Sequence record: PQ182779.1
Strand: one strand, 5' to 3'
DNA: 64,000 bases
In this document: positions 6,594 to 61,690 of the stretch, piece after piece
Position numbering within the stretch: the stretch's first letter is position 1
How the letters are laid out: every line of letters starts with the position of its first letter
Translations under genes and position numbers: made by a program
Notes under the pieces: generated by a model
Told to the model about the DNA's origin: nothing
The model's database searches: none
Seen by the model: the letters and a program-made list of their open reading frames with translations, nothing else

Positions 6594-6854
6594 TTTGGGT
6601 CATAACCTTTGCAAAGGGTGATAATACGGGCGTTCGTAACATAAGATATACCTTGCTCAGAGATCTTTTTACGCACTTCGCCTTTAGTCTGATAATAAGA
6701 AGAAAGTCGTTATTAAAACGCACAGAGAATACGCTTTATACAATCAATTGATCGAAAATAAATTAAAGGTATAAATTCGTTTTTGCTAACCCTGATCCAG
6801 CGTAATTCTCCGGATGGTTTGCTATGTTAACAATCGCGTTTAAAAGGTGTCAAC

Positions 6855-7478: not shown

Positions 7479-7484
7479 GCACAG

Positions 7485-7513
7485 AGAGAGGAGGGCAGCT
7501 GCCCTCCTCTCTT
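7485..7513 (+). terminator. intrinsic terminator
   Basis: AGAGAGGAGGGCA/TGCCCTCCTCTCT stem followed by T-rich sequence. Confidence 0.75.
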
Positions 7514-7547
7514 TCTATTTTACGTGCTGTGGAATTTATTTGAAGAC

Positions 7548-7563
7548 TATATCACTTTATTGA
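7548..7563 (+). promoter_or_regulatory. phage early (vRNAP-type) promoter motif
   Basis: TATATCAC-TTTA-TTGA; one of nine intergenic copies resembling the phiKZ early motif TATATTAC. Confidence 0.7.
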
Positions 7564-7587
7564 AAGCTTACCTAGAGGGCCTTAGGA

Positions 7588-8292
7588 TTGAAAACTGAAG
7601 CGGAACGAAAATTATATTCTGTTTGTAATTTGGTGGCGATGTCAACGCATTCTGCCACTGGGCAAAAAAGAAAAGGGTCTAACAAACCTTATTACATCCA
7701 TCCGTTTTCCGTCAGTGAAACGCTCAAGGAAAATGACTACCCTATCACCGTAGTCTGCGCAGGTCTACTTCATGACGTGGTTGAGGATACTGAGATCTCT
7801 TTAGAGGATCTCCGTTTTATGCTGTTTACGTTTGATAGCATAGACGGCAATTACACTCAACTGGTTGACGAGACACTGAAACTCGTTGATTGGGTTACGG
7901 ATCGCTACACGACTAAAACCATACAAGCGAACCGGAAAGACCGAACGATGTTAGAGGCGACGAAACTCCTTAACTCCGCTAACCCTGACGCGTGGGCGGT
8001 GAAATTGGCAGATATCCTCGACAACCTAAAAGACGTTGAAGGGATAGAAGTCACCTTCCTTAAAATTTGGCTCACGGAAAAAGATCTCTTTACGCAGTTT
8101 CTTCCGAAAGGGCGTTACTACGCGCATCTTCACAAACTTGTCACTGACCGTATTACTGAGCTTGATAAAATCTATCATTTCCGTGATACGCAATGCTGGC
8201 ACCGGTACCGTGATGCCATGGAATTTTTCTTAGATGATAACAACCGCAAGGAGTTTGAAAATGCCTACCGAATCAATCCTGAATCTTGTTGA
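7588..8292 (+). CDS. HD-domain (p)ppGpp hydrolase-like protein (Mesh1/SpoT-HD, small alarmone hydrolase)
   Basis: H..Q.RK....PY..HP, LLHDVVEDT and VKLAD..DN motifs. Confidence 0.85.
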   Translation: MKTEAERKLYSVCNLVAMSTHSATGQKRKGSNKPYYIHPFSVSETLKENDYPITVVCAGLLHDVVEDTEISLEDLRFMLFTFDSIDGNYTQLVDETLKLVDWVTDRYTTKTIQANRKDRTMLEATKLLNSANPDAWAVKLADILDNLKDVEGIEVTFLKIWLTEKDLFTQFLPKGRYYAHLHKLVTDRITELDKIYHFRDTQCWHRYRDAMEFFLDDNNRKEFENAYRINPESC

Positions 8293-10907: not shown

Positions 10908-10912
10908 TAGAC

Positions 10913-10943
10913 AATTGGAGATGAAGCCATCTCCAATTTTTTT
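10913..10943 (+). terminator. intrinsic terminator
   Basis: AATTGGAGATG/CATCTCCAATT stem plus T-run. Confidence 0.8.
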
Positions 10944-10949
10944 AACATC

Positions 10950-10965
10950 TATATAGCTACAGTGA
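10950..10965 (+). promoter_or_regulatory. phage early promoter motif
   Basis: TATATAGC-TACA-GTGA followed by the hairpin + TAACTAAAC leader. Confidence 0.7.
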
Positions 10966-11024
10966 TTTAGGAAAGATAAAACCTTTCCGTAAATAAAATA
11001 ACTAAACCTATTGGAGTGCTATTA

Positions 11025-12250: not shown

Positions 12251-12745
12251 ATGAAAAACGTAAAATTCGCTGTGGCTGCTCTGGTACTGTCTCTGTCTTC
12301 TACTGCGTTCGCTGCGCAGGAAATGGTGTGGGATGCAGAATACACCCAAACTCAAATGTCATGTGGGATCGATTTTGCCAATGGTCAGCAGACCGGCGGG
12401 ATCCTTCTGAAAGGCGAGCAAGGTACCGATAATCAAAAGGCAGTTAACTTCGTACTGAAAAGTAACACCGCGCGCCAGAGCTGGAAACTGACCGAAGCCA
12501 AACTGACCCAAAACACCGGGCGCTTCGCCTTCGCTGATAACCTCATGACCATCAGCGATCGTTCGCAAACTTCCGTATTCATCAACAACCAGGAATACGC
12601 GTGGTCTGCCGCTGCTCAAAATCAGCAGATCCAGGGTAACAGCAAAACGCTGGCTATCGCGCCGAAAATCAATCTCGACGCACAAGAGATGCCGCTGGGC
12701 ACTACTCACATCCAGGGCAAAGTTGTCCTGACCTGCGAAAACTAA
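12251..12745 (+). CDS. fimbrial/pilin-like secreted subunit
   Basis: Signal peptide ending TAFA; N-terminal Cys (QMSCGI); terminal strand MPLGTTHIQGKVVLTCEN like the P.G.Y...V..TC end of fimbrial subunits; high-expression codon bias. Confidence 0.55.
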   Translation: MKNVKFAVAALVLSLSSTAFAAQEMVWDAEYTQTQMSCGIDFANGQQTGGILLKGEQGTDNQKAVNFVLKSNTARQSWKLTEAKLTQNTGRFAFADNLMTISDRSQTSVFINNQEYAWSAAAQNQQIQGNSKTLAIAPKINLDAQEMPLGTTHIQGKVVLTCEN

Positions 12746-12753
12746 TCCACTCC

Positions 12754-12780
12754 CGTCTCCGGTTCTCTGAACCGGAGACG
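12754..12780 (+). terminator. strong hairpin (terminator or mRNA-stabilising stem)
   Basis: 12-bp stem CGTCTCCGGTTC/GAACCGGAGACG; weak U-tract. Confidence 0.6.
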
Positions 12781-12812
12781 TTCTAAAACGTTAACGTTAA
12801 GGAAGATATAAA

Positions 12813-13232
12813 ATGTTTTACTCGCTGACCCTACTTTCCAAAATACTCTCTTTGTTCTCCTGCTTCGCCCTGGCTATTCTCATTATTGCGAAAATCCCGT
12901 TATTAGAGGATGCAGTAATTTACTGGGTGATCACGTTGATCACAATACGCTTACTCTGGCTGGGTTTCCAGTTCTTCTCCTTCCCTGACCTCTCAAGAAT
13001 ATCGCTGACGCCAGAGAACAAAAGTAAACTTCGCCAAAAAATAGAGAAGCATCTGACTTTCACTGGCGGGATGAACGTTACGCTGCGTTTAATCGTGGCT
13101 GTGGTGCTATTCATTCTGCTCTGCGTTCACCATGAGTACTTATTAGGTATTCTGTCTATCGCTACTTTCTTTGTCCGAATGTTTTTCGAGATTGAAGCGA
13201 TAATCGAAATTGAATCGCTAAAACGCGTATAA
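12813..13232 (+). CDS. multi-pass membrane protein (about 4 TM)
   Basis: SD AAGGAAG; four hydrophobic segments. Confidence 0.7.
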   Translation: MFYSLTLLSKILSLFSCFALAILIIAKIPLLEDAVIYWVITLITIRLLWLGFQFFSFPDLSRISLTPENKSKLRQKIEKHLTFTGGMNVTLRLIVAVVLFILLCVHHEYLLGILSIATFFVRMFFEIEAIIEIESLKRV

Positions 13233-13266
13233 AAAAGAGAGGGCGTTTGCCCTCTCTTTTTTTTTG
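13231..13266. terminator. bidirectional intrinsic terminator
   Basis: A-run + GAGAGGGC/GCCCTCTC + T-run between convergent genes. Confidence 0.85.
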
Positions 13267-13271
13267 TTTCT

Positions 13272-13841
13272 TTACGGCGTTTGGAACGGGTTGATCAGAA
13301 ATGCAAACTGGTATTTCTCAAATCCCTCTGCTTTCAGTTTCCATCCAATGTAAACCTTAAACCGGCGTTTCTTCACGTGGTCGTCACGCATGAAGTAGAC
13401 CATCCAGTAATGGGACTTATAGGTGCCTTTAACATCAAACCCTTTACCCTCTAAAACAGGTTGACGGAATTTGTCTTTTGGTGCACCTAACACGCTAATA
13501 GAAAAACCGTACAATGGATTGCGGTATAACCAAAAGACACGGGCGACGTAAGTTTGCGCCCATTCAGGGAGTATCTTTACCCAGAGAGAGTGTTTCTCTT
13601 TCCAACCGGAATCCCCATCTAAACTATTGTCCGGTGTGTCGAACCATTTCAGCCATTTCGGTAGTTTCCCGGCCTTCGTCGCAAAGGCCGGTAGAAACGG
13701 TGTGACAATGACGCAAATGATCAACGCTGCGAAGTAGATCAATAAAAAACTCAGCCAATGCAAGAAGCCCAATAACGGAACAGGATGTCCCCAAAGCGTA
13801 ATTTTCTTCATCGTATTCAATCCCCAAGGTAGATGTTTCAT
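13272..13841 (-). CDS. conserved phage membrane-associated protein (WF.TPDN.LDGD.GW family)
   Basis: N-terminal TM helix; WLKWFDTPDNSLDGDSGW and WLYRNP.YGF motifs. Confidence 0.7.
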   Translation of the reverse strand: MKHLPWGLNTMKKITLWGHPVPLLGFLHWLSFLLIYFAALIICVIVTPFLPAFATKAGKLPKWLKWFDTPDNSLDGDSGWKEKHSLWVKILPEWAQTYVARVFWLYRNPLYGFSISVLGAPKDKFRQPVLEGKGFDVKGTYKSHYWMVYFMRDDHVKKRRFKVYIGWKLKAEGFEKYQFAFLINPFQTP

Positions 13842-13858
13842 AAAAACTTCAATAAATC

Positions 13859-13933
13859 GAAATGCAGTTTTTTTGATGTATATATTGCTAAGGTGAAATA
13901 GGAAAGGAAAAAGTCTTTTCCAAATAACTAAAC
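13859..13933 (+). repeat. about 75-bp promoter/leader module, near-identical to 34815-34888
   Basis: GAAATGCAGTTTTTTTGATGTATATAT.GC.AAGGTGAA..AGGAAAGG...AATAACTAAAC present at both loci. Confidence 0.85.
13881..13896 (+). promoter_or_regulatory. phage early promoter motif
   Basis: TATATTGC-TAAG-GTGA. Confidence 0.75.
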
Positions 13934-13952
13934 CAATAAGAGGTAAAGTAAA

Positions 13953-14111
13953 ATGAAAGAAAGTATACTTTTATTAATTGTCACTCTCATTGCATTGCTT
14001 TGTTTCGGCGTATCGTTACCGATGGCCATCCTTTACGGGTTCGTCTCTGTGCTCGTCTGGTATATTGTTTCGCCGTTCGCTCTGTTAGTCTCCGTTACCT
14101 ATTTATCCTAA
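13953..14111 (+). CDS. 52-aa hydrophobic membrane peptide (not in ORF track)
   Basis: SD GAGG; MKESILLLIVTLIALLCFGVSLPMAILYGFVSVLVWYIVSPFALLVSVTYLS*. Confidence 0.75.
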   Translation: MKESILLLIVTLIALLCFGVSLPMAILYGFVSVLVWYIVSPFALLVSVTYLS

Positions 14112-14126
14112 GAGGGAGAAATCATC

Positions 14127-14297
14127 ATGTCTTACTTCATCACGTTAATTCTCACTCTGCTGATCTGCACCTTCTTTGAACTGACTATCATCCCAGCAGT
14201 TCTGGTAGCGTTCGCCGCGGGAGTTATTGGAGCGCTTTCAGAAGAGCAGTTTAACAAAGCCAATTTCAACGCAACTCATTCACCGGAGGCGTTGTAA
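14127..14297 (+). CDS. 56-aa membrane peptide (not in ORF track)
   Basis: SD GAGGGAG; MSYFITLILTLLICTFFELTIIPAVLVAFAAGVIGALSEEQFNKANFNATHSPEAL*. Confidence 0.75.
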   Translation: MSYFITLILTLLICTFFELTIIPAVLVAFAAGVIGALSEEQFNKANFNATHSPEAL

Positions 14298-14416
14298 TGA
14301 AAACGTCTTTCGTGGTACTGGGGATTATTTCCTCGGTACTTATTCTTGACCTGGCTTTACTCCCGGCCTGCGTTTTCGCCGTCGCCGTAGGGGGTTACTT
14401 AAAAGCGGTCAAATAG
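14297..14416 (+). CDS. 39-aa membrane peptide (not in ORF track)
   Basis: SD GGAGG, TAATG coupling; MKTSFVVLGIISSVLILDLALLPACVFAVAVGGYLKAVK*. Confidence 0.7.
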   Translation: MKTSFVVLGIISSVLILDLALLPACVFAVAVGGYLKAVK

Positions 14417-14496
14417 TAGTAAGCGCTGCCTCTCAACAGCGTGAGTAGTGCACTCTCACCCGTAGTTAAATTATTCAATTCAAAAGGTAAATTATC

Positions 14497-14784
14497 ATGG
14501 AAAAAATCAAAGCGTTCTTCTCTTTCTCTTTCACTGAGAAAACCAAAGCAATCTTTGCTTTCATCACCGACACCCTGATCGTTGCCGCGCTGGCAATCTT
14601 CGCCGCGTTCTGCATGGCTACTGCCATGGAAGTGGCGGCCTACGCTTTTGCGGTCTTGGTTATCTTCAGCTATATTCACGATAGCTACAACAACCTCAAA
14701 ACCGTCATTTCTCCTGCCACTGACGGCGAGACTGCGACTGACGCAGGCGAGACCGACGTCTCTGACGCAGCGGTAACCGCTTAA
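14497..14784 (+). CDS. 2-TM membrane protein with acidic tail
   Basis: SD AAAGG; long hydrophobic core; D/E/T-rich C-terminus. Confidence 0.75.
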   Translation: MEKIKAFFSFSFTEKTKAIFAFITDTLIVAALAIFAAFCMATAMEVAAYAFAVLVIFSYIHDSYNNLKTVISPATDGETATDAGETDVSDAAVTA

Positions 14785-14864
14785 GTCGTCACCTCACCCT
14801 TGGCACACGAGATAAGAAGGAAACGCCTTACGATAAGCTAAATTAAATTCTCACACTCTCAAAC

Positions 14865-15068
14865 CGTTATAAGACGATATTTCTCGTTACCCACCCGACA
14901 CCTGTAATCGAGGCTGTGGCGTTGTACCTACTGACTCTTCCGAAATCGAGGAAAGATCAGAGTTCAGGGACAATAGCAGTAAACCCTCTTACTGGTTCGG
15001 TAGTTGCAGAACAATTGACAGGCTTCGCCGTCTGGTTCTGGACATCGCCGTATGCGACTCTTATAACG
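14865..15068 (+). ncRNA. candidate structured non-coding RNA (204 nt)
   Basis: 10-bp perfect closing stem CGTTATAAGA/TCTTATAACG enclosing several nested helices within a 335-nt intergenic gap. Confidence 0.5.
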
Positions 15069-15119
15069 CAAACAACTCTCTCACGTCTAAGTCTACTCTT
15101 AAAGTAAAAGGAAAAAAAT

Positions 15120-15392
15120 ATGTTAATCTTTACTATCGTAATGGGCTTATTAGCAGCGATAGCGATTATCATTGCTGTTGCCGTTGATCGTAATAAGTTA
15201 TTTGGTATCGAAAAACGCAATGAGATCATTAAAGGCTGCTACATCTTCTCTTGCTTGGTCGGTATCTCTGCTCTGTTGGGCTGCGCGTTTGTACCATATT
15301 ACGCAATCCTCTTTATCTTCATACCTGTTTCCGCGTTGGTTTTTAAATACGTAATTGAAGTAGAGCTGGAAATTAATAACTATTGGTACTAG
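15120..15392 (+). CDS. 3-TM membrane protein ending NYWY
   Basis: SD AAGGA; hydrophobic segments. Confidence 0.75.
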   Translation: MLIFTIVMGLLAAIAIIIAVAVDRNKLFGIEKRNEIIKGCYIFSCLVGISALLGCAFVPYYAILFIFIPVSALVFKYVIEVELEINNYWY

Positions 15393-15465
15393 GTAAAAAT
15401 TGTCGTCATTGAGTTCGTAGTTAAATTTTAAAAACTTTGTTCGCTAAAAATAAGGAGATATAACC

Positions 15466-15774
15466 ATGACTCTTTTAATCATTTTTGCTATTCTTGTTGT
15501 CATTGGTTTACTCTGTAGTGCATTTTTTACCATATTCTACCGCGGTAAAGTTGACGCAGACGTCGTTGCCGAAGAGGTAACGACCGAAGCAGTTTGTACT
15601 ACCGAAGAAATGGTTAACGAAGAACCTGCTGTTAACGATGTTCTTTTCTACGGTGAACCAACGGAAAGACAAAAAGAAAAACACAAACGTCATCGTAACC
15701 GCCATCGCGTGTCCGGCAATAACCGCCGCACGTGGCACGACAAATTTGATGATGCTGACTACCAACCACTTTAA
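15466..15774 (+). CDS. N-terminally anchored membrane protein with acidic linker and basic His/Arg patch
   Basis: SD AAGGAG; single TM; KHKRHRNRHR. Confidence 0.75.
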   Translation: MTLLIIFAILVVIGLLCSAFFTIFYRGKVDADVVAEEVTTEAVCTTEEMVNEEPAVNDVLFYGEPTERQKEKHKRHRNRHRVSGNNRRTWHDKFDDADYQPL

Positions 15775-15794
15775 GACAAACCGAGGACTACTCC

Positions 15795-16103
15795 ATGGAA
15801 TTCTATTTGTTCATTTCTGTTGTTACTTTTGCTGTCCTGGCGATGATCACTTTCTTAACCTACATCGCTAACAAAAAGTTAACTGCAAAGTGCGCAACAC
15901 CAGAAGTCCTTTACGATAATTCCTGGAAAGGTCGCTCGATAAGAAAACTCCGTGATTGGACTTGTTTCTTAAGTAAAATCGGGTACCTGATCAGTCATGT
16001 CGCTTTCTGGATCATGCGCGCTGTCTTCGAAGGTCTCGTTTATCAGAAAACAAGAGAAGCGGTAGCAAGAGAATCGTTTCATTCCCGTAATTACTGGTAC
16101 TAG
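15795..16103 (+). CDS. N-terminally anchored membrane protein ending NYWY
   Basis: SD GAGG; single N-terminal TM. Confidence 0.75.
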   Translation: MEFYLFISVVTFAVLAMITFLTYIANKKLTAKCATPEVLYDNSWKGRSIRKLRDWTCFLSKIGYLISHVAFWIMRAVFEGLVYQKTREAVARESFHSRNYWY

Positions 16104-16171
16104 TCCACTGACGCAGTTTCCTTGTCGTTCAACTATCTATCGATTTACATTAACTTAATAAGGTCTATTCC

Positions 16172-16642
16172 ATGAAAAAATTCATTGCTGCTTCACTCAT
16201 CGCCCTGTCCTCTATCGCGTCCTTCAATGTCATGGCCATCGTCAATAATTGGACCGAATCTTATCAGCAGGGTACTCTGGAATTCTACACCGAAAACAGC
16301 GACGGTTTTTCGCTCGCATTCTCTTGCCGCGATACTGGCGATCAATGGCCGGTTCAAGCGCTGTTTCTGAACGGTACTAACGGCAACTCGCTTTCCAGCG
16401 ATGATGATCGCTACGCGCTGGTTATCGAAATGGGCGGTCAGAAGTACCAGATGATCTCTCCTGTTTCTACCGTTGGGGCAAGTAACTGGCGCTTGTTCTT
16501 CGAAGGCGTTAAGAAAACCAAAGCAAAAACCGTTAAGGTTTACGTACAAGATCATCCAGAGACCTTCGTTGTTTTCTCAACTAACGGGCTCAAGAAAATC
16601 GTCGCCGAAAATAAAGGCGGTAACTGCTTCTTTCTCGGCTAA
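16172..16642 (+). CDS. secreted/periplasmic beta-rich protein
   Basis: Signal peptide MKKFIAASLIALSSIASFNVMA; two Cys. Confidence 0.75.
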   Translation: MKKFIAASLIALSSIASFNVMAIVNNWTESYQQGTLEFYTENSDGFSLAFSCRDTGDQWPVQALFLNGTNGNSLSSDDDRYALVIEMGGQKYQMISPVSTVGASNWRLFFEGVKKTKAKTVKVYVQDHPETFVVFSTNGLKKIVAENKGGNCFFLG

Positions 16643-16755
16643 ACAAGTGGGTGGAGAGGGTAAACCCTCTCCGCTCCTAGATCTTTTTCTTTTTTAAGTT
16701 TATTCTGTCTTTCTTTGAGGCAAGCCGCCTAGAATAAAGAAAGGATAGCGTTACC

Positions 16756-16923
16756 ATGTCACAAACCACCCCTGAAAAGAAAGACGAAAGTCTGGATTTT
16801 GATTCATTCACTCTGAGCGAAGAAGAAGCGGAATCGGCGTTAGCGAAAGCCGAAGCGTTTATCGAAGAACAACCCGAAATCGAAGCCAGCGATGACTGCG
16901 AAGGCGGGGCATGTAAAATTTAA
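16756..16923 (+). CDS. 55-aa acidic peptide ending in an NrdA-like redox tail (DDCEGGACKI); not in ORF track
   Basis: SD AAGGA; clean ORF MSQTTPEKKDESLDFDSFTLSEEEAESALAKAEAFIEEQPEIEASDDCEGGACKI*; followed by a terminator. Confidence 0.85.
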   Translation: MSQTTPEKKDESLDFDSFTLSEEEAESALAKAEAFIEEQPEIEASDDCEGGACKI

Positions 16924-16927
16924 TTCT

Positions 16928-16955
16928 AAGGGCGTTTTCGCCCTTATTTGTTTTG
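16928..16955 (+). terminator. intrinsic terminator
   Basis: AAGGGCG-TTTT-CGCCCTT then T-rich. Confidence 0.65.
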
Positions 16956-17375
16956 TTTCATGAAAGGGTATTCAACGTGTTTAAACCGGCTAATGTTAGT
17001 AAACTAGTTAATATTTATCTCCCCTTACCGAACTACCTGCGCGCTGCCGATATCGAACGGTTATCAAGGGCGTTTAAAACCAGACAAGTTCTTGAGGGTG
17101 AACTTAATCCTCAATTAACTAAACTCGCTTGGGAAAATACTAACGAATTCTTCGCACGTTTTAGAAAGATCGTGACGCCTTCTCACTTCATCGGTAATTT
17201 CAGACTGACCGATAAAGGGATCAAAGCCGATATCGCCATTACGGATAAAACTTTGATCGAATACGAAGGAGTGATAACCCTTAAACGCCGCACCTTCAAT
17301 GACTATTGGAAGTTGGGTGACAGTTACAAAGACGCCCCAGGATTCTTTGGGGTAGACATTTTCACACGGAGCTAA
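16953..17375 (+). CDS. possible truncated, inactive prohead-protease paralogue
   Basis: LEGELNP...F..RF..I..PSH.I resembles the GE(L/Y).HP...R...I....SH.I core of T4 gp21/phiKZ gp175-type proteases but lacks the His. Confidence 0.4.
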   Translation: MFHERVFNVFKPANVSKLVNIYLPLPNYLRAADIERLSRAFKTRQVLEGELNPQLTKLAWENTNEFFARFRKIVTPSHFIGNFRLTDKGIKADIAITDKTLIEYEGVITLKRRTFNDYWKLGDSYKDAPGFFGVDIFTRS

Positions 17376-17377
17376 TC

Positions 17378-17611
17378 ATGGAAACTGAATGGGACCACAT
17401 TCTTCTCACGTTACAACTGGCGTACAGCGAGCACAAAACTCAAACGGCTATCAAAACAGCCGCCAGGTTAATGGCGACTAAAGTCAAAGAAATTGACTGT
17501 TATAACTGGCTGATGAAAGTGACACTCTCGCCGGCGCCATTGAAAGTTTTAGTCCGCGAACTCAAGGAGCGTCGCCCTGATGACTTACGATATTATCCGG
17601 GGGTCGCGTAG
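17378..17611 (+). CDS. hypothetical protein
   Basis: SD GGAG; 77 aa. Confidence 0.65.
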   Translation: METEWDHILLTLQLAYSEHKTQTAIKTAARLMATKVKEIDCYNWLMKVTLSPAPLKVLVRELKERRPDDLRYYPGVA

Positions 17612-32315: not shown

Positions 32316-32333
32316 TCGAAAACAATAGACGAA

Positions 32334-32349
32334 TATATCACTCTATTGA
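32334..32349 (+). promoter_or_regulatory. phage early promoter motif
   Basis: TATATCAC-TCTA-TTGA. Confidence 0.7.
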
Positions 32350-32417
32350 AATACGCAACAGAATGTCGGCGTTATTGCTGACATTCTTTTTATTATCCAC
32401 ACTAAAAGGAGAACGAC

Positions 32418-34795: not shown

Positions 34796-34814
34796 AAAAA
34801 CTTTCTAAGAGAAT

Positions 34815-34888
34815 GAAATGCAGTTTTTTTGATGTATATATAGCCAAGGTGAAGAAGGAAAGGTAAAGACCTTTCTGAATAACTAAAC
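34815..34888 (+). repeat. second copy of the about 75-bp promoter/leader module
   Basis: Near-identical to 13859-13933. Confidence 0.85.
34837..34852 (+). promoter_or_regulatory. phage early promoter motif
   Basis: TATATAGC-CAAG-GTGA. Confidence 0.75.
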
Positions 34889-34903
34889 TTAGAGGAAAGA
34901 GAA

Positions 34904-37113: not shown

Positions 37114-37144
37114 AAAGAAAGGGGTTCGCCCCTTTCTTTTTTTT
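37113..37144 (+). terminator. intrinsic terminator
   Basis: AAAGGGG-TTCG-CCCCTTT plus T-run. Confidence 0.85.
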
Positions 37145-37165
37145 GTTTCAAATTGAATTAAAAAC

Positions 37166-37181
37166 TATATCACGTTATTGA
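37166..37181 (+). promoter_or_regulatory. phage early promoter motif
   Basis: TATATCAC-GTTA-TTGA. Confidence 0.7.
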
Positions 37182-37206
37182 ATGTACTAACTAGAGGAGT
37201 ATTACC

Positions 37207-39238: not shown

Positions 39239-39302
39239 ATAAAATACTCCCCTCTAGAGACGGAAACGTCTCTAGAGGTTCTATAATCGTTAAGAGGGTT
39301 TT

Positions 39303-39647
39303 TTGATGAAATTGCCTATGAGTATAATTAAAACTACACCTTGTGTTAAATTTTATCGCAATGAAAAAAGAATCATCGCTACCTTTTCCCGGGCGGTTCG
39401 TAGAAGTTGTCGAATACCTGACGTCAAGGTAGAAATTGGAACCCTGGAAAATAAAGAAATGTTTCGATTCCGGTTTCTTCCTTTAGAGAGTAACGTAGGA
39501 AGACGCGTCCGTGCTAACGAGACATCATGGCCTGTTAAATACGTTTTTGATAAGGAATGGATTCCGTTGGAAGGCGGAAGTCGAATCGTTGTCACGTTGG
39601 CGCCGGATGGATGGTGGTACGGAAATTACACCGACAGGATCGAATAA
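39303..39647 (+). CDS. small basic beta-rich hypothetical protein
   Basis: SD GAGGG; 114 aa. Confidence 0.6.
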   Translation: MMKLPMSIIKTTPCVKFYRNEKRIIATFSRAVRRSCRIPDVKVEIGTLENKEMFRFRFLPLESNVGRRVRANETSWPVKYVFDKEWIPLEGGSRIVVTLAPDGWWYGNYTDRIE

Positions 39648-45241: not shown

Positions 45242-45289
45242 TCGTTAGTATGTAGGACTTTTATCTGCTTCAATCATTTAAGATCATCA

Positions 45290-45321
45290 ACGGAGCGGGG
45301 TTTTCCCGCTCCGTCTTTTTT
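45290..45321 (+). terminator. intrinsic terminator
   Basis: ACGGAGCGGG/CCCGCTCCGT stem plus T-run. Confidence 0.85.
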
Positions 45322-45351
45322 ATTTTGTTTTGTTGGAAAAGAAATAGGACA

Positions 45352-45367
45352 TATATTACCCTATTGA
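45352..45367 (+). promoter_or_regulatory. phage early promoter motif
   Basis: TATATTAC-CCTA-TTGA (exact phiKZ early octamer). Confidence 0.75.
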
Positions 45368-45445
45368 ACATAGCTGTAATCGCTTTGTACGGGTTTATCA
45401 ATTTATTTGATAGATAGTACTACTGACAGTAAAAAGAGGCTTAGA

Positions 45446-45856
45446 ATGACTTACAGGAAGTCTGGTGACGTCATGATAGTTAAAGGCGAGATCCCAAAGA
45501 TCTTTTACTGGATTAATTCACCCTATCACGGTATTTTCACCGTGAAAGAAATTTTCTACGCGACCTGGATGACGTGGTTTCATTTCCGGGAACGAAAGCA
45601 TTGGGCGCAAGGGATCTATTTGTTAACCGATAAGGTAGAACCCAGTAAAATGTTACCGGGTAGAGATAAACGTGATTTTAACGCAATGATCGAAACGATC
45701 TTCAATCGGGTTAATGAAAAAGAAAAGGAACTCACCGCGCTCTTTCAATTGGAAGGTGTCCCGCGTCATTATCGTGTCCTCGACTTTTCTTTCCAACACA
45801 ATCATTTTGAAATTACACTGGGAACTGAAGACCATGTTGATTGTCATCGATATTAA
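45446..45856 (+). CDS. array protein 1 (hypothetical)
   Basis: SD GAGG; first ORF of the overlapping array. Confidence 0.65.
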   Translation: MTYRKSGDVMIVKGEIPKIFYWINSPYHGIFTVKEIFYATWMTWFHFRERKHWAQGIYLLTDKVEPSKMLPGRDKRDFNAMIETIFNRVNEKEKELTALFQLEGVPRHYRVLDFSFQHNHFEITLGTEDHVDCHRY

Positions 45857-46238: not shown

Positions 46239-46552
46239 ACGCTTTCCTTTCTACCGCGTACCACTGGGAAAAAGGAAAAACCAAAGATTATAACAAACTG
46301 TTCATTGAGATTTATTACTCGAATAACATTGACCCGCTGGAAAGCGATTTTGAAACGATTCCCGATGATCCTTATTATCGGGACCAGTTATCGTTTTACA
46401 TGTCTCTTCAGGAAGAAATTGAAAAAATGAAAAATACAGGCGTATTAGAAAAAATCCTTAGCGATCTTCGTTCTCAATGGGATCGATACGGTATTTACGG
46501 TGAATGCTACACGGAACGGATGAACTCACGTACCTATCTTGTTTATCGATAA
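46148..46552 (+). CDS. array protein 3 (hypothetical)
   Basis: SD GAGG; YLFEIPPAL...RMNSRTYLVY. Confidence 0.65.
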   Translation: MAVQKYLFEIPPALKVFTDGYKGLWRDQIIDAFLSTAYHWEKGKTKDYNKLFIEIYYSNNIDPLESDFETIPDDPYYRDQLSFYMSLQEEIEKMKNTGVLEKILSDLRSQWDRYGIYGECYTERMNSRTYLVYR

Positions 46553-46562
46553 GGTCTCTATT

Positions 46563-49062: not shown

Positions 49063-49363
49063 TTATTTTTATCAGGGTCTTTTAGACGAAGTCCAATGCG
49101 ATGAAGATGATGATACGGTTATTGACATCGAATACCTAAAGGACTCGACCAGGAAGCTCGTATTGGAAGTCATTGACAGCGGATTGAAAACTACTGTTCC
49201 TTCTATTGAACACGGTGAGATTGCTGGTCATCTTTTTCTCACCCACGAAACCTTGAAAGAACGAGTGGAAGAAATCACCAGTAAAACAACCTTTCGTTAT
49301 GTAGACCTCGAGTACTTCGACTCTACTACGTTAATGTTGCTTTTCGAATCGGGAGAAAATTAA
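49004..49363 (+). CDS. array protein 10 (hypothetical)
   Basis: IKVLTSLVRL...YFDSTTLMLLFE. Confidence 0.65.
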   Translation: MKNMKIKVLTSLVRLPLIFSYFYQGLLDEVQCDEDDDTVIDIEYLKDSTRKLVLEVIDSGLKTTVPSIEHGEIAGHLFLTHETLKERVEEITSKTTFRYVDLEYFDSTTLMLLFESGEN

Positions 49364-53152: not shown

Positions 53153-53357
53153 TAGTTTTCTCCGAGCGACTAATCATTTTTAAAGTGCATCTGCTATATT
53201 ATGAAAGAACTCCTTCATAACGAAGGACTAGCCCTAAATGGGCATAATGACTATTATATGTAGAAAGTTCTAATCGGAAACCCGATTGACTCTCTATTGA
53301 GTGAGGTCTATTATATCTCATCGCTATAAAAGACCCATTTCAAACTTTTTTCACATC

Positions 53358-53373
53358 TATATCACAATAGTGA
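53358..53373 (+). promoter_or_regulatory. phage early promoter motif upstream of chimallin
   Basis: TATATCAC-AATA-GTGA. Confidence 0.7.
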
Positions 53374-53436
53374 AGAAGGTAATGAGTACCTTCAGAATCG
53401 CGATAAAAATTGTTTTAACTCCTAGGAGATTTAAAG

Positions 53437-61596: not shown

Positions 61597-61605
61597 CAGG
61601 AATAC

Positions 61606-61643
61606 CCGAGCGAGTCGTGAGACTCGCTCGGTTCCATTTGTTT
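61606..61643 (+). terminator. intrinsic terminator
   Basis: CCGAGCGAGTC-GTGA-GACTCGCTCGG. Confidence 0.75.
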
Positions 61644-61650
61644 TCGTGCA

Positions 61651-61666
61651 TATATTACTCTATTGA
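61651..61666 (+). promoter_or_regulatory. phage early promoter motif
   Basis: TATATTAC-TCTA-TTGA. Confidence 0.75.
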
Positions 61667-61690
61667 TAGCCGTAAACCCGAGGAAAAACC

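Follow-up and report, generated by a model that had tools for sequence, protein, structure and literature searches.

RNAs of at least 200 nt that combine multi-way junctions with invariant loops are uncommon, and those that have been studied often serve catalysis, ligand sensing, or ribonucleoprotein assembly. Most conserved structures located between cistrons in bacteria and phages are cis-regulatory. The lysine riboswitch is a five-way junction closed by a P1 helix, ROOL and GOLLD are much larger than the element described here, and the species 1 and 2 RNAs of phage T4 are stable small RNAs encoded beside tRNA genes. Nucleus-forming jumbo phages are under development for therapy against Klebsiella, and to our knowledge very little is known about their non-coding RNA. 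According to PMC12286853, ROOL, GOLLD, and OLE form homo-oligomeric complexes, and PMC13282480 cites reports of ncRNAs for phiKZ. The phage phiKp24 is a jumbo myophage that encodes tubulin-spindle (PhuZ-like) and nucleus-shell proteins (10.1101/2021.03.02.433402).

Here, we analyzed a window of 64,000 nt that comprises the first 64 kb, with coordinates unchanged, of the Klebsiella jumbo phage vB_kp_MJ359 (PQ182779.1, 300.8 kb), which is kin to the nucleus-forming phage phiKp24 (vB_KpM_FBKp24, genus Maaswegvirus). Nine sister records match the query at 99% identity or more, giving 10 MJ359-type records, and the next-nearest relatives are vB_KpM_FBKp24 and vB_KpM_Centimanus. A gap of 335 nt (14785-15119) separates two annotated plus-strand genes (14497-14784 and 15120-15392). 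Within this gap, a first-pass annotation made from the letters alone had proposed a multi-branched structured RNA closed by a perfect 10-bp inverted repeat. The features of the locus are as follows.

13842-13952, plus strand: promoter-like module (T-run, TATATA box, hairpin, AATAACTAAAC), which recurs at three other gaps
14497-14784, plus strand: upstream gene kpMJ359_031, encoding 95 aa with a hydrophobic segment; a homolog precedes the element in every lineage
14838-14864, plus strand: 5′ linker, G-free and unstructured, read from the sequence
14865-14873, plus strand: 5′ arm of P1, the closing helix, with changes on both sides at four of nine pairs
14874-14887, plus strand: small hairpin P2 (ACGA/UCGU) of the MJ359 minimum free energy (MFE) fold, weakly supported
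14895-15000, plus strand: long irregular arm P3, about 100 nt, the same arm in independent MFE folds of MJ359 and FBKp24
14907-14915, plus strand: invariant block AUCGAGGCU on the 5′ strand of P3, the first AAUCGAG copy, identical in three lineages
14942-14949, plus strand: P3 terminal loop GAAAUCGA, the second AAUCGAG copy, with the palindrome UCGA
14979-14989, plus strand: conserved GUAAAC...CUCU on the 3′ strand of P3, its CUC pairing with the GAG of the invariant block
15003-15043, plus strand: hairpin P4 (CAGAAC/GUUCUG plus an inner stem), 100% of cells paired, four of nine pairs changed on both sides
15045-15057, plus strand: hairpin P5 (UCGC-loop-GCGA), sequence conserved
15060-15068, plus strand: 3′ arm of P1, with 15059 as an optional 10th pair
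15069-15119, plus strand: 3′ linker, G-free to 15084, not conserved between lineages
15120-15392, plus strand: downstream gene kpMJ359_032, encoding a 90-aa hydrophobic protein

Operon and lineage context of the element

The promoter-like module at 13842-13952 and a hairpin followed by a T-run after 16643 appear to bracket a plus-strand operon of eight small genes, with the element midway along it. The ~90-nt module is present in four copies in the window (10908-11024, 13842-13952, 34796-34903, and 53322-53436), each running from a T-run through (G/C)AT(G/C)TATATA and GTGA to a hairpin, AGGAAAG...CTTTCC; in three of the four copies, AATAACTAAAC then precedes a plus-strand gene. Judged by this arrangement, the recurring module looks like a promoter and 5′-leader cassette, and the operon carrying the element probably starts near 13.9 kb. 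Several metagenomic contigs match only 13855-13912 and then run into unlike sequence, as expected for a repeated cassette. A second upstream motif, TATAT(C/T)AC-N3-TATTGA, occurs at 7479-7638, 32316-32417, 37114-37206, and 61597-61690. It resembles what we take to be the early-promoter consensus of phiKZ-type phages and, if that likeness is true, would identify genes transcribed by the virion RNA polymerase. Other gaps of 260 to 470 nt in the window, by a crude ORF call with ATG starts only, lie at 6594-6854, 39239-39606, 45242-45713, 46239-46562, and 49063-49363.

At the element itself, we found no processing site, promoter, or terminator, and the motif TCTCAC(A)CTCTC upstream of P1 was not enriched in the window. 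A sigma-70-like site (TGGACA-N17-TATAAC, 15039-15067) was set aside: it has no final T, is weaker in the other lineages, and leaves the conserved spacer unexplained. The Shine-Dalgarno sequence of gene 032 (AAGGA, 15108-15112) lies inside the 3′ linker, 40 to 50 nt past P1. Expression was examined in assembled contigs from three true RNA libraries and one library labeled "RNA?". Over 12500-17500, the contig sets of the three RNA libraries cover fragments of the neighboring genes and leave the gap uncovered, a pattern that is uninformative on absence but lends no support to an abundant, stable RNA; the fourth library, probably DNA, shows only the KpLz_1_41-type variant. A transcriptome or RNA description for MJ359 or phiKp24-like phages was not found in the literature.

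To place the element among related phages, we compared the syntenic gaps. FBKp24 and Centimanus carry a gap of 390 nt in the same position, 3′ of a homolog of the 95-aa gene (43 to 44% protein identity). Two protein clusters of the 95-aa homolog led to metagenomic contigs, of which L110 is FBKp24-like, whereas the element of L112 and L113 is only 87% identical to the FBKp24 copy. The element therefore occupies the syntenic gap of three sub-lineages (MJ359-type; FBKp24, Centimanus, and L110; L112 and L113), always 3′ of the small hydrophobic-protein gene homolog. Between the MJ359 and FBKp24 lineages, the operon is near saturation (48 to 57% nucleotide identity in most genes), and identity in the element is 50 to 58%. 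The DUF7338 gene on the minus strand (window 13272-13811) is 89% identical at the protein level between MJ359 and FBKp24, whereas the divergently transcribed operon 028-034 shows only the 48 to 57% nucleotide identity just given, forming a sharp boundary between conserved and hypervariable sequence.

Downstream of the element, gene content varies even among close relatives. In six sister phages (6 of 10), a different 95-aa hydrophobic protein replaces kpMJ359_032, and the start codon is the breakpoint. This point is a breakpoint of module exchange, and the block of small membrane-protein genes around it is hypervariable. In the KpLz_1_41 type (L004:1920-3426, compared with the window from 15120 onwards), other small genes follow the gene for the swapped 95-aa protein. 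Family scans returned no match for the products of kpMJ359_031 and kpMJ359_032 and nothing useful for the eight operon proteins. Upstream of the element, the FBKp24 lineage alone (L002:3320-3385; L112:1233-1298) carries a hairpin of 30 to 35 nt between the upstream stop codon and the element. FBKp24 and L112 show covariation between the arms of this hairpin, which is overlapped by an 11-codon ORF that has a good Shine-Dalgarno sequence (MMKRLEISSVT versus MMKRLDLNGNA), and the MJ359 lineage has a 35-nt deletion at this position. Elsewhere in Centimanus, an annotated endonuclease gene (L003:148-1116) lies between the homologs of 025 and 026; it is absent there in MJ359 and FBKp24 and is probably a homing-endonuclease insertion.

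Fold of the element and its comparative support

In MJ359, the 10-bp inverted repeat described at first pass is present in the sequence and perfect (CGTTATAAGA, 14865-14874; TCTTATAACG, 15059-15068; 184 nt between the arms), and there is no G in either flank (14838-14864 and 15069-15084, as read from the sequence). The plus-strand MFE of 14865-15068 is −63.1 kcal/mol, and the fold consists, in order, of the closing helix P1, the small hairpin P2, the long irregular arm P3, and the hairpins P4 and P5; base 14874 either extends P1 to 10 bp or opens P2. The helices that the first-pass annotation had listed are recovered in part: the closing stem, CTGA-CTC/GAG-T-TCAG with TCC/GGA, CAGAAC/GTTCTG around GAC-GGC/GCC-GTC, and TCGC/GCGA belong to the MFE fold, whereas CTACTGA/TCGGTAG and CAGTAA/TTACTG fall outside it and have no counterpart in related phages.

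Taken alone, the MJ359 sequence is structured only marginally above chance. Its folding z-score is −2.56 on the plus strand and −2.65 on the minus strand, and 3 to 4 of 200 shuffles fold equally well. The comparison of folding energy with shuffles suggested at first pass thus yields a modest excess only (z about −2.6), and chance alone would place about 16 perfect inverted repeats of 10 bp within 250 nt in a shuffled window. A fold that arose by chance in a long spacer, and has no function, would agree with these values, as neither the repeat nor the z-score rises much above what chance would give in a 64-kb window. The comparative tests that follow (the same fold in a diverged relative, the covariance model, compensatory pairs, and the FBKp24/L112 statistics) disfavor this explanation, and we give it the slightest chance of those considered here.

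Independent MFE folding of the FBKp24 copy returned the same helices in the same order as in MJ359. P1 is 12 bp long in FBKp24, with a different sequence in the same place, and ranges from 9 to 13 bp across lineages. In P3, the GAG/CUC pairing persists and the AAAUCGA terminal loop caps a stem that is entirely different. P4 reads CAAGAU/AUCUUG where MJ359 has CAGAAC/GUUCUG, and P5 is retained. A single C-to-U change in P5 of the KpLz_1_41 type gives a U-G pair. P2 is not conserved, its pairing being poor or different in the lineages of FBKp24 and L112. A covariance model trained solely on the MJ359-type sequences and the MJ359 fold finds FBKp24, Centimanus, and L112 (32 to 37 bits, E = 3e-9 to 6e-8), whereas a sequence-only model from the same MJ359-type alignment finds none of these three at E ≤ 10. 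Recognition therefore depends on structure.

Changes on both sides that keep the pair were counted in several ways. In model-fitted alignments, they occur at 18 of 69 pairs (four sequences) and at 19 of 62 pairs (six sequences), compared with 0 to 5 such pairs in slid controls with partners shifted by 1 to 3 columns; because model-fitted alignments lean toward structure, this test of 18 to 19 pairs is not an independent one. A plain MAFFT alignment analyzed by RNAalifold gives 11 pairs with changes on both sides. Eight basal pairs of P3 show such changes. The elements of FBKp24 and L112 align without gaps and differ by 28 substitutions, so that no fitting to structure is involved. On the FBKp24 MFE fold, five pairs carry changes at both positions and still pair, versus 0.63 expected if the substitutions were placed at random (P about 2e-4), and four pairs are broken versus about 11.7 expected (P about 1e-4). 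Between these two copies, a G-C pair in P3 becomes A-U, with a G-U intermediate in Centimanus; two A-U pairs become G-C in the distal stem of P3 below the invariant loop; and both strands of a six-base basal segment of P3 are replaced. In P4, two wobble pairs become Watson-Crick pairs. Identity between FBKp24 and L112 is 87% in the element, 80 to 95% in the genes, and about 73% in the spacers flanking the gene pair. As to the covariation asked for in the original annotation, compensatory changes are present among related phages.

Three blocks are invariant in all lineages: AUCGAGGCU, the P3 loop AAAUCGAG (14943-14950), and the P4-base/P5 block, UGGnCAUCG...GCGA. The block at 14907-14915 forms a direct repeat with 14944-14951, with which it shares sequence; every lineage carries two copies of AAUCGAG at a spacing of 38 nt, and the palindrome UCGA lies within this motif. 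No lineage departs from the loop sequence AAAUCGA(G), while its supporting stem, which shows covariation inside the FBKp24 lineage, is wholly different from one lineage to the next.

Selection has preserved the fold even as sequence divergence approaches saturation. With only three sub-lineages available, the covariation rests on few independent events, and since all of the evidence comes from one phage group, the finding is solid but narrow, with both its statistics and its generality limited. We conclude that the stretch 14865-15068 forms a structured, non-coding RNA domain of ~205 to 220 nt that is conserved and in which P1 closes a multi-way junction (P2 to P5). That this is a real, selected structure is highly likely, and the element is very probably a functional RNA.

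Strand, coding potential, and distribution

Neither Watson-Crick covariation nor folding energy distinguishes the strands, and a functional RNA antisense to the operon might be read from the minus strand. The MJ359 element folds equally well on that strand (−64.8 kcal/mol, z −2.65), the FBKp24 copy stands out more from shuffles (z −5.34 on the minus strand versus −2.65 on the plus strand), the consensus-fold energy is lower (−48.0 versus −42.5), and two single changes are A-C on the plus strand and G-U on the minus strand. Wobble pairs point to the plus strand. Read from that strand, the base of P4 holds a U-G wobble that all lineages retain, and five single-step changes pass through G-U on the plus strand and A-C on the minus strand, versus the two of the opposite kind; in an antisense RNA, the P4-base U-G and these five steps would become C-A mismatches. 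The flanking genes, moreover, are all on the plus strand, and no promoter-like site for the minus strand was found flanking the element. We consider that the element is probably read from the plus strand and that an antisense RNA is improbable.

A coding reading was rejected, since the lineages differ by indels whose lengths are not divisible by three and share no ORF across the element. The ORFs at 14916-15107 (plus strand) and 14957-15229 (minus strand) had been dismissed at first pass; neither has a conserved counterpart in other lineages.

The genomes of MJ359, FBKp24, and Centimanus each contain one copy of the element. A second, weak model match in FBKp24 (243234-243395, 17.8 bits) is spurious, as it lies antisense within a coding gene and lacks P3. 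No further copies were found in IMG/VR (two DNA patterns) or in JGI metagenomes and GTDB genomes (one pattern each); pattern matches were re-scored by the covariance model, and all extra matches failed. Searches by blastn against phages, plasmids, and E. coli genomes matched only the known phage group. None of the loci around distant DUF7338 homologs carries the element, the two closest contigs being too short to show it. Within the collections searched, only one phage group therefore carries the element. By these sequence searches, it occurs once per genome and is restricted to nucleus-forming Klebsiella jumbo phages of the phiKp24-like (Maaswegvirus-type) group.

Copy number also bears on whether the segment acts as DNA, be it as a MITE relic, as a boundary at which modules recombine, or as a cruciform of the origin type. 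In keeping with such a role, the element has terminal inverted repeats, CAAAC stands on both of its outer sides in MJ359 (14860-14864 and 15069-15073), and the recombination breakpoint at the start codon of gene 032 is about 50 nt downstream. However, each 300-kb genome holds a single copy; pattern and model searches of the viral, metagenome, and genome collections, and blastn against plasmids and E. coli, found no others; the FBKp24 lineage lacks the flanking direct repeat; the compensatory changes are internal and not only at the ends; and a GC-skew turning point is absent at the locus. A role as DNA is accordingly very improbable. A MITE in particular was rejected on the grounds of one copy per genome and a CAAAC direct repeat found only in the MJ359 lineage. 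The element resembles MITEs in its terminal inverted repeats, its size of about 200 bp, and the 5-bp direct repeat alongside it in MJ359, but, unlike them, it is present in a single copy, keeps its syntenic position, diverges vertically, and has compensatory changes in its interior.

Proposed role and comparison with described RNAs

Our preferred reading, to which we assign a probability of roughly 0.45 as a whole, is that the element is a conserved plus-strand RNA module that works through a partner. It would be transcribed from the plus strand within the operon that starts near 13.9 kb and would fold as a self-contained module between linkers that are G-free and unstructured. The module may then act as an RNA in its own right, with a protein or RNA partner recognizing the invariant loops, rather than via the neighboring ribosome-binding site. 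Endonucleolytic cuts within the linkers could release it. The insulation of the element by linkers that are not conserved on either side, its long P1, and its invariant loops fit a self-contained module better than a simple leader or stabilizer. Two further observations argue for autonomy: the element is retained where the downstream gene has been swapped (six sister phages) and where the FBKp24 lineage has an extra upstream hairpin and mini-ORF. On these sequence comparisons, an autonomous module rather than a cis-regulator is a tentative reading that we would place somewhat short of even odds.

The base rate favors a different explanation, as cis-regulation is commonest for intercistronic structures: a cis-acting leader or operator, riboswitch-like or protein-binding, that when bound would alter translation or transcript elongation of gene 032 and later genes. 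In every lineage, the element is about 50 nt upstream of the next cistron start, and its P1-closed multi-way junction with invariant internal nucleotides is like that of many aptamers. The swapped downstream proteins are all small and hydrophobic with a similar layout, and the 11-codon mini-ORF and covarying upstream hairpin of the FBKp24 lineage recall leader-peptide control. Yet the mini-ORF and hairpin are missing from the MJ359 lineage, and no expression platform or terminator was found. The Shine-Dalgarno sequence is in the non-conserved, unstructured linker 40 to 50 nt past P1, with no alternative pairing seen to cover it; P1, at 9 to 13 bp, would make a long switching helix; conservation does not extend to the junction strands; and Rfam riboswitch and leader models give no match at E ≤ 10. 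We regard a cis-acting leader as unlikely, while according it real weight.

The element could instead serve mRNA processing or stability and nothing further, as a cistron separator, an exonuclease block, or an RNase III/E site. Its intercistronic position inside a long plus-strand operon and its closed, stable fold between single-stranded linkers are consistent with this explanation, and the AU-rich stretch upstream (14840-14849) could serve RNase E. For such a purpose, however, a hairpin would suffice, whereas a 200-nt multi-arm plan and three invariant unpaired or loop blocks are kept here although the rest of the locus is near saturation; nor is there a conserved, regular 20-bp duplex for RNase III, the long regular stretch of FBKp24 being lost in MJ359. 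A dedicated processing or stability element thus seems doubtful. An RNase III site was also rejected as a class assignment: the fold has no conserved regular duplex of ~20 bp or more, P1 has 9 to 13 bp, and the regular stretch of P3 in FBKp24 is lost in MJ359.

A more far-reaching version of the preferred reading, in which the module represents a new class of complex-folded RNA with its own biochemical role, specific to nucleus-forming Klebsiella jumbo phages, is possible but unlikely at present. Such an RNA might be a ribonucleoprotein scaffold, might self-associate via the two AAUCGAG (UCGA) sites, or might be a ribozyme or a ligand sensor, and on this model it would act in host takeover or in the handling of phage membrane-protein mRNAs. 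The element offers a testable object, with a defined fold, compensatory mutants (P1, the distal stem of P3, and P4), three natural variants, and invariant loops.

To compare the element with described RNAs, we scanned Rfam 15 (4,227 models). No model matched anywhere in the window at its gathering score, and none matched 14700-15200 on either strand at E ≤ 10, including riboswitches, leaders, ribozymes, and Intron_gpI. A tRNA, tmRNA, or tRNA-like identity was rejected, as ARAGORN found no gene in the window, the P5 loop is 5 nt, and P3 and P4 are far too long. The original description of a multi-branched structured RNA that could not be assigned to a class is thus borne out by covariation, by the Rfam scan at E ≤ 10, and by the tRNA and tmRNA negatives. 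The msr-msd RNA of retrons shares with the element a length of ~200 nt and bounding inverted repeats of ~10 nt (a1/a2), a feature too generic to suffice. The neighbors of the element are 95-aa and 90-aa hydrophobic proteins, and reverse transcriptase (PF00078) is absent from the whole MJ359 and FBKp24 genomes. Bacterial Y RNA (YrlA) was likewise rejected, as Ro60/TROVE (PF05731) is absent from both genomes and there is no Rfam match. With neither a reverse transcriptase nor Ro60 in either phage, the retron and Y-RNA readings are removed.

The likeness to riboswitch aptamers is closer and consists of a P1-closed multi-hairpin junction, a position upstream of a gene, and invariant internal nucleotides. 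The element differs from them in that Rfam gives no match, an expression platform is lacking, P1 is long, and its junction strands show no conservation. A riboswitch was rejected with respect to the expression platform, as there is no terminator-like site and the Shine-Dalgarno sequence (15108-15112) is in the non-conserved linker. A group I intron was rejected because Intron_gpI does not match, the upstream gene ends at a stop codon of its own, and the downstream gene is equipped with a separate Shine-Dalgarno sequence and ATG. Among self-cleaving ribozymes, no Rfam family matched (E ≤ 10, 14700-15200).

No described family matches the element in sequence, structure, or gene context, and it is a new RNA family. 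Like the small RNAs of T4 and phiKZ, it is phage-encoded and non-coding, is probably cotranscribed with its neighbors, and has paired 5′ and 3′ ends; unlike them, it has no tRNA genes in the window, and it shares no homology with them. With ROOL, GOLLD, HEARO, raiA, and OLE, some of which are phage-associated, it has no sequence or structure match in Rfam, and it is confined to one phage group. What it shares with these RNAs is a non-coding multi-helix architecture in which invariant loops are carried on a covarying scaffold. By analogy with the complexes of ROOL, GOLLD, and OLE, the palindromic UCGA loop might mediate RNA-RNA contacts, an idea that we offer as pure conjecture.
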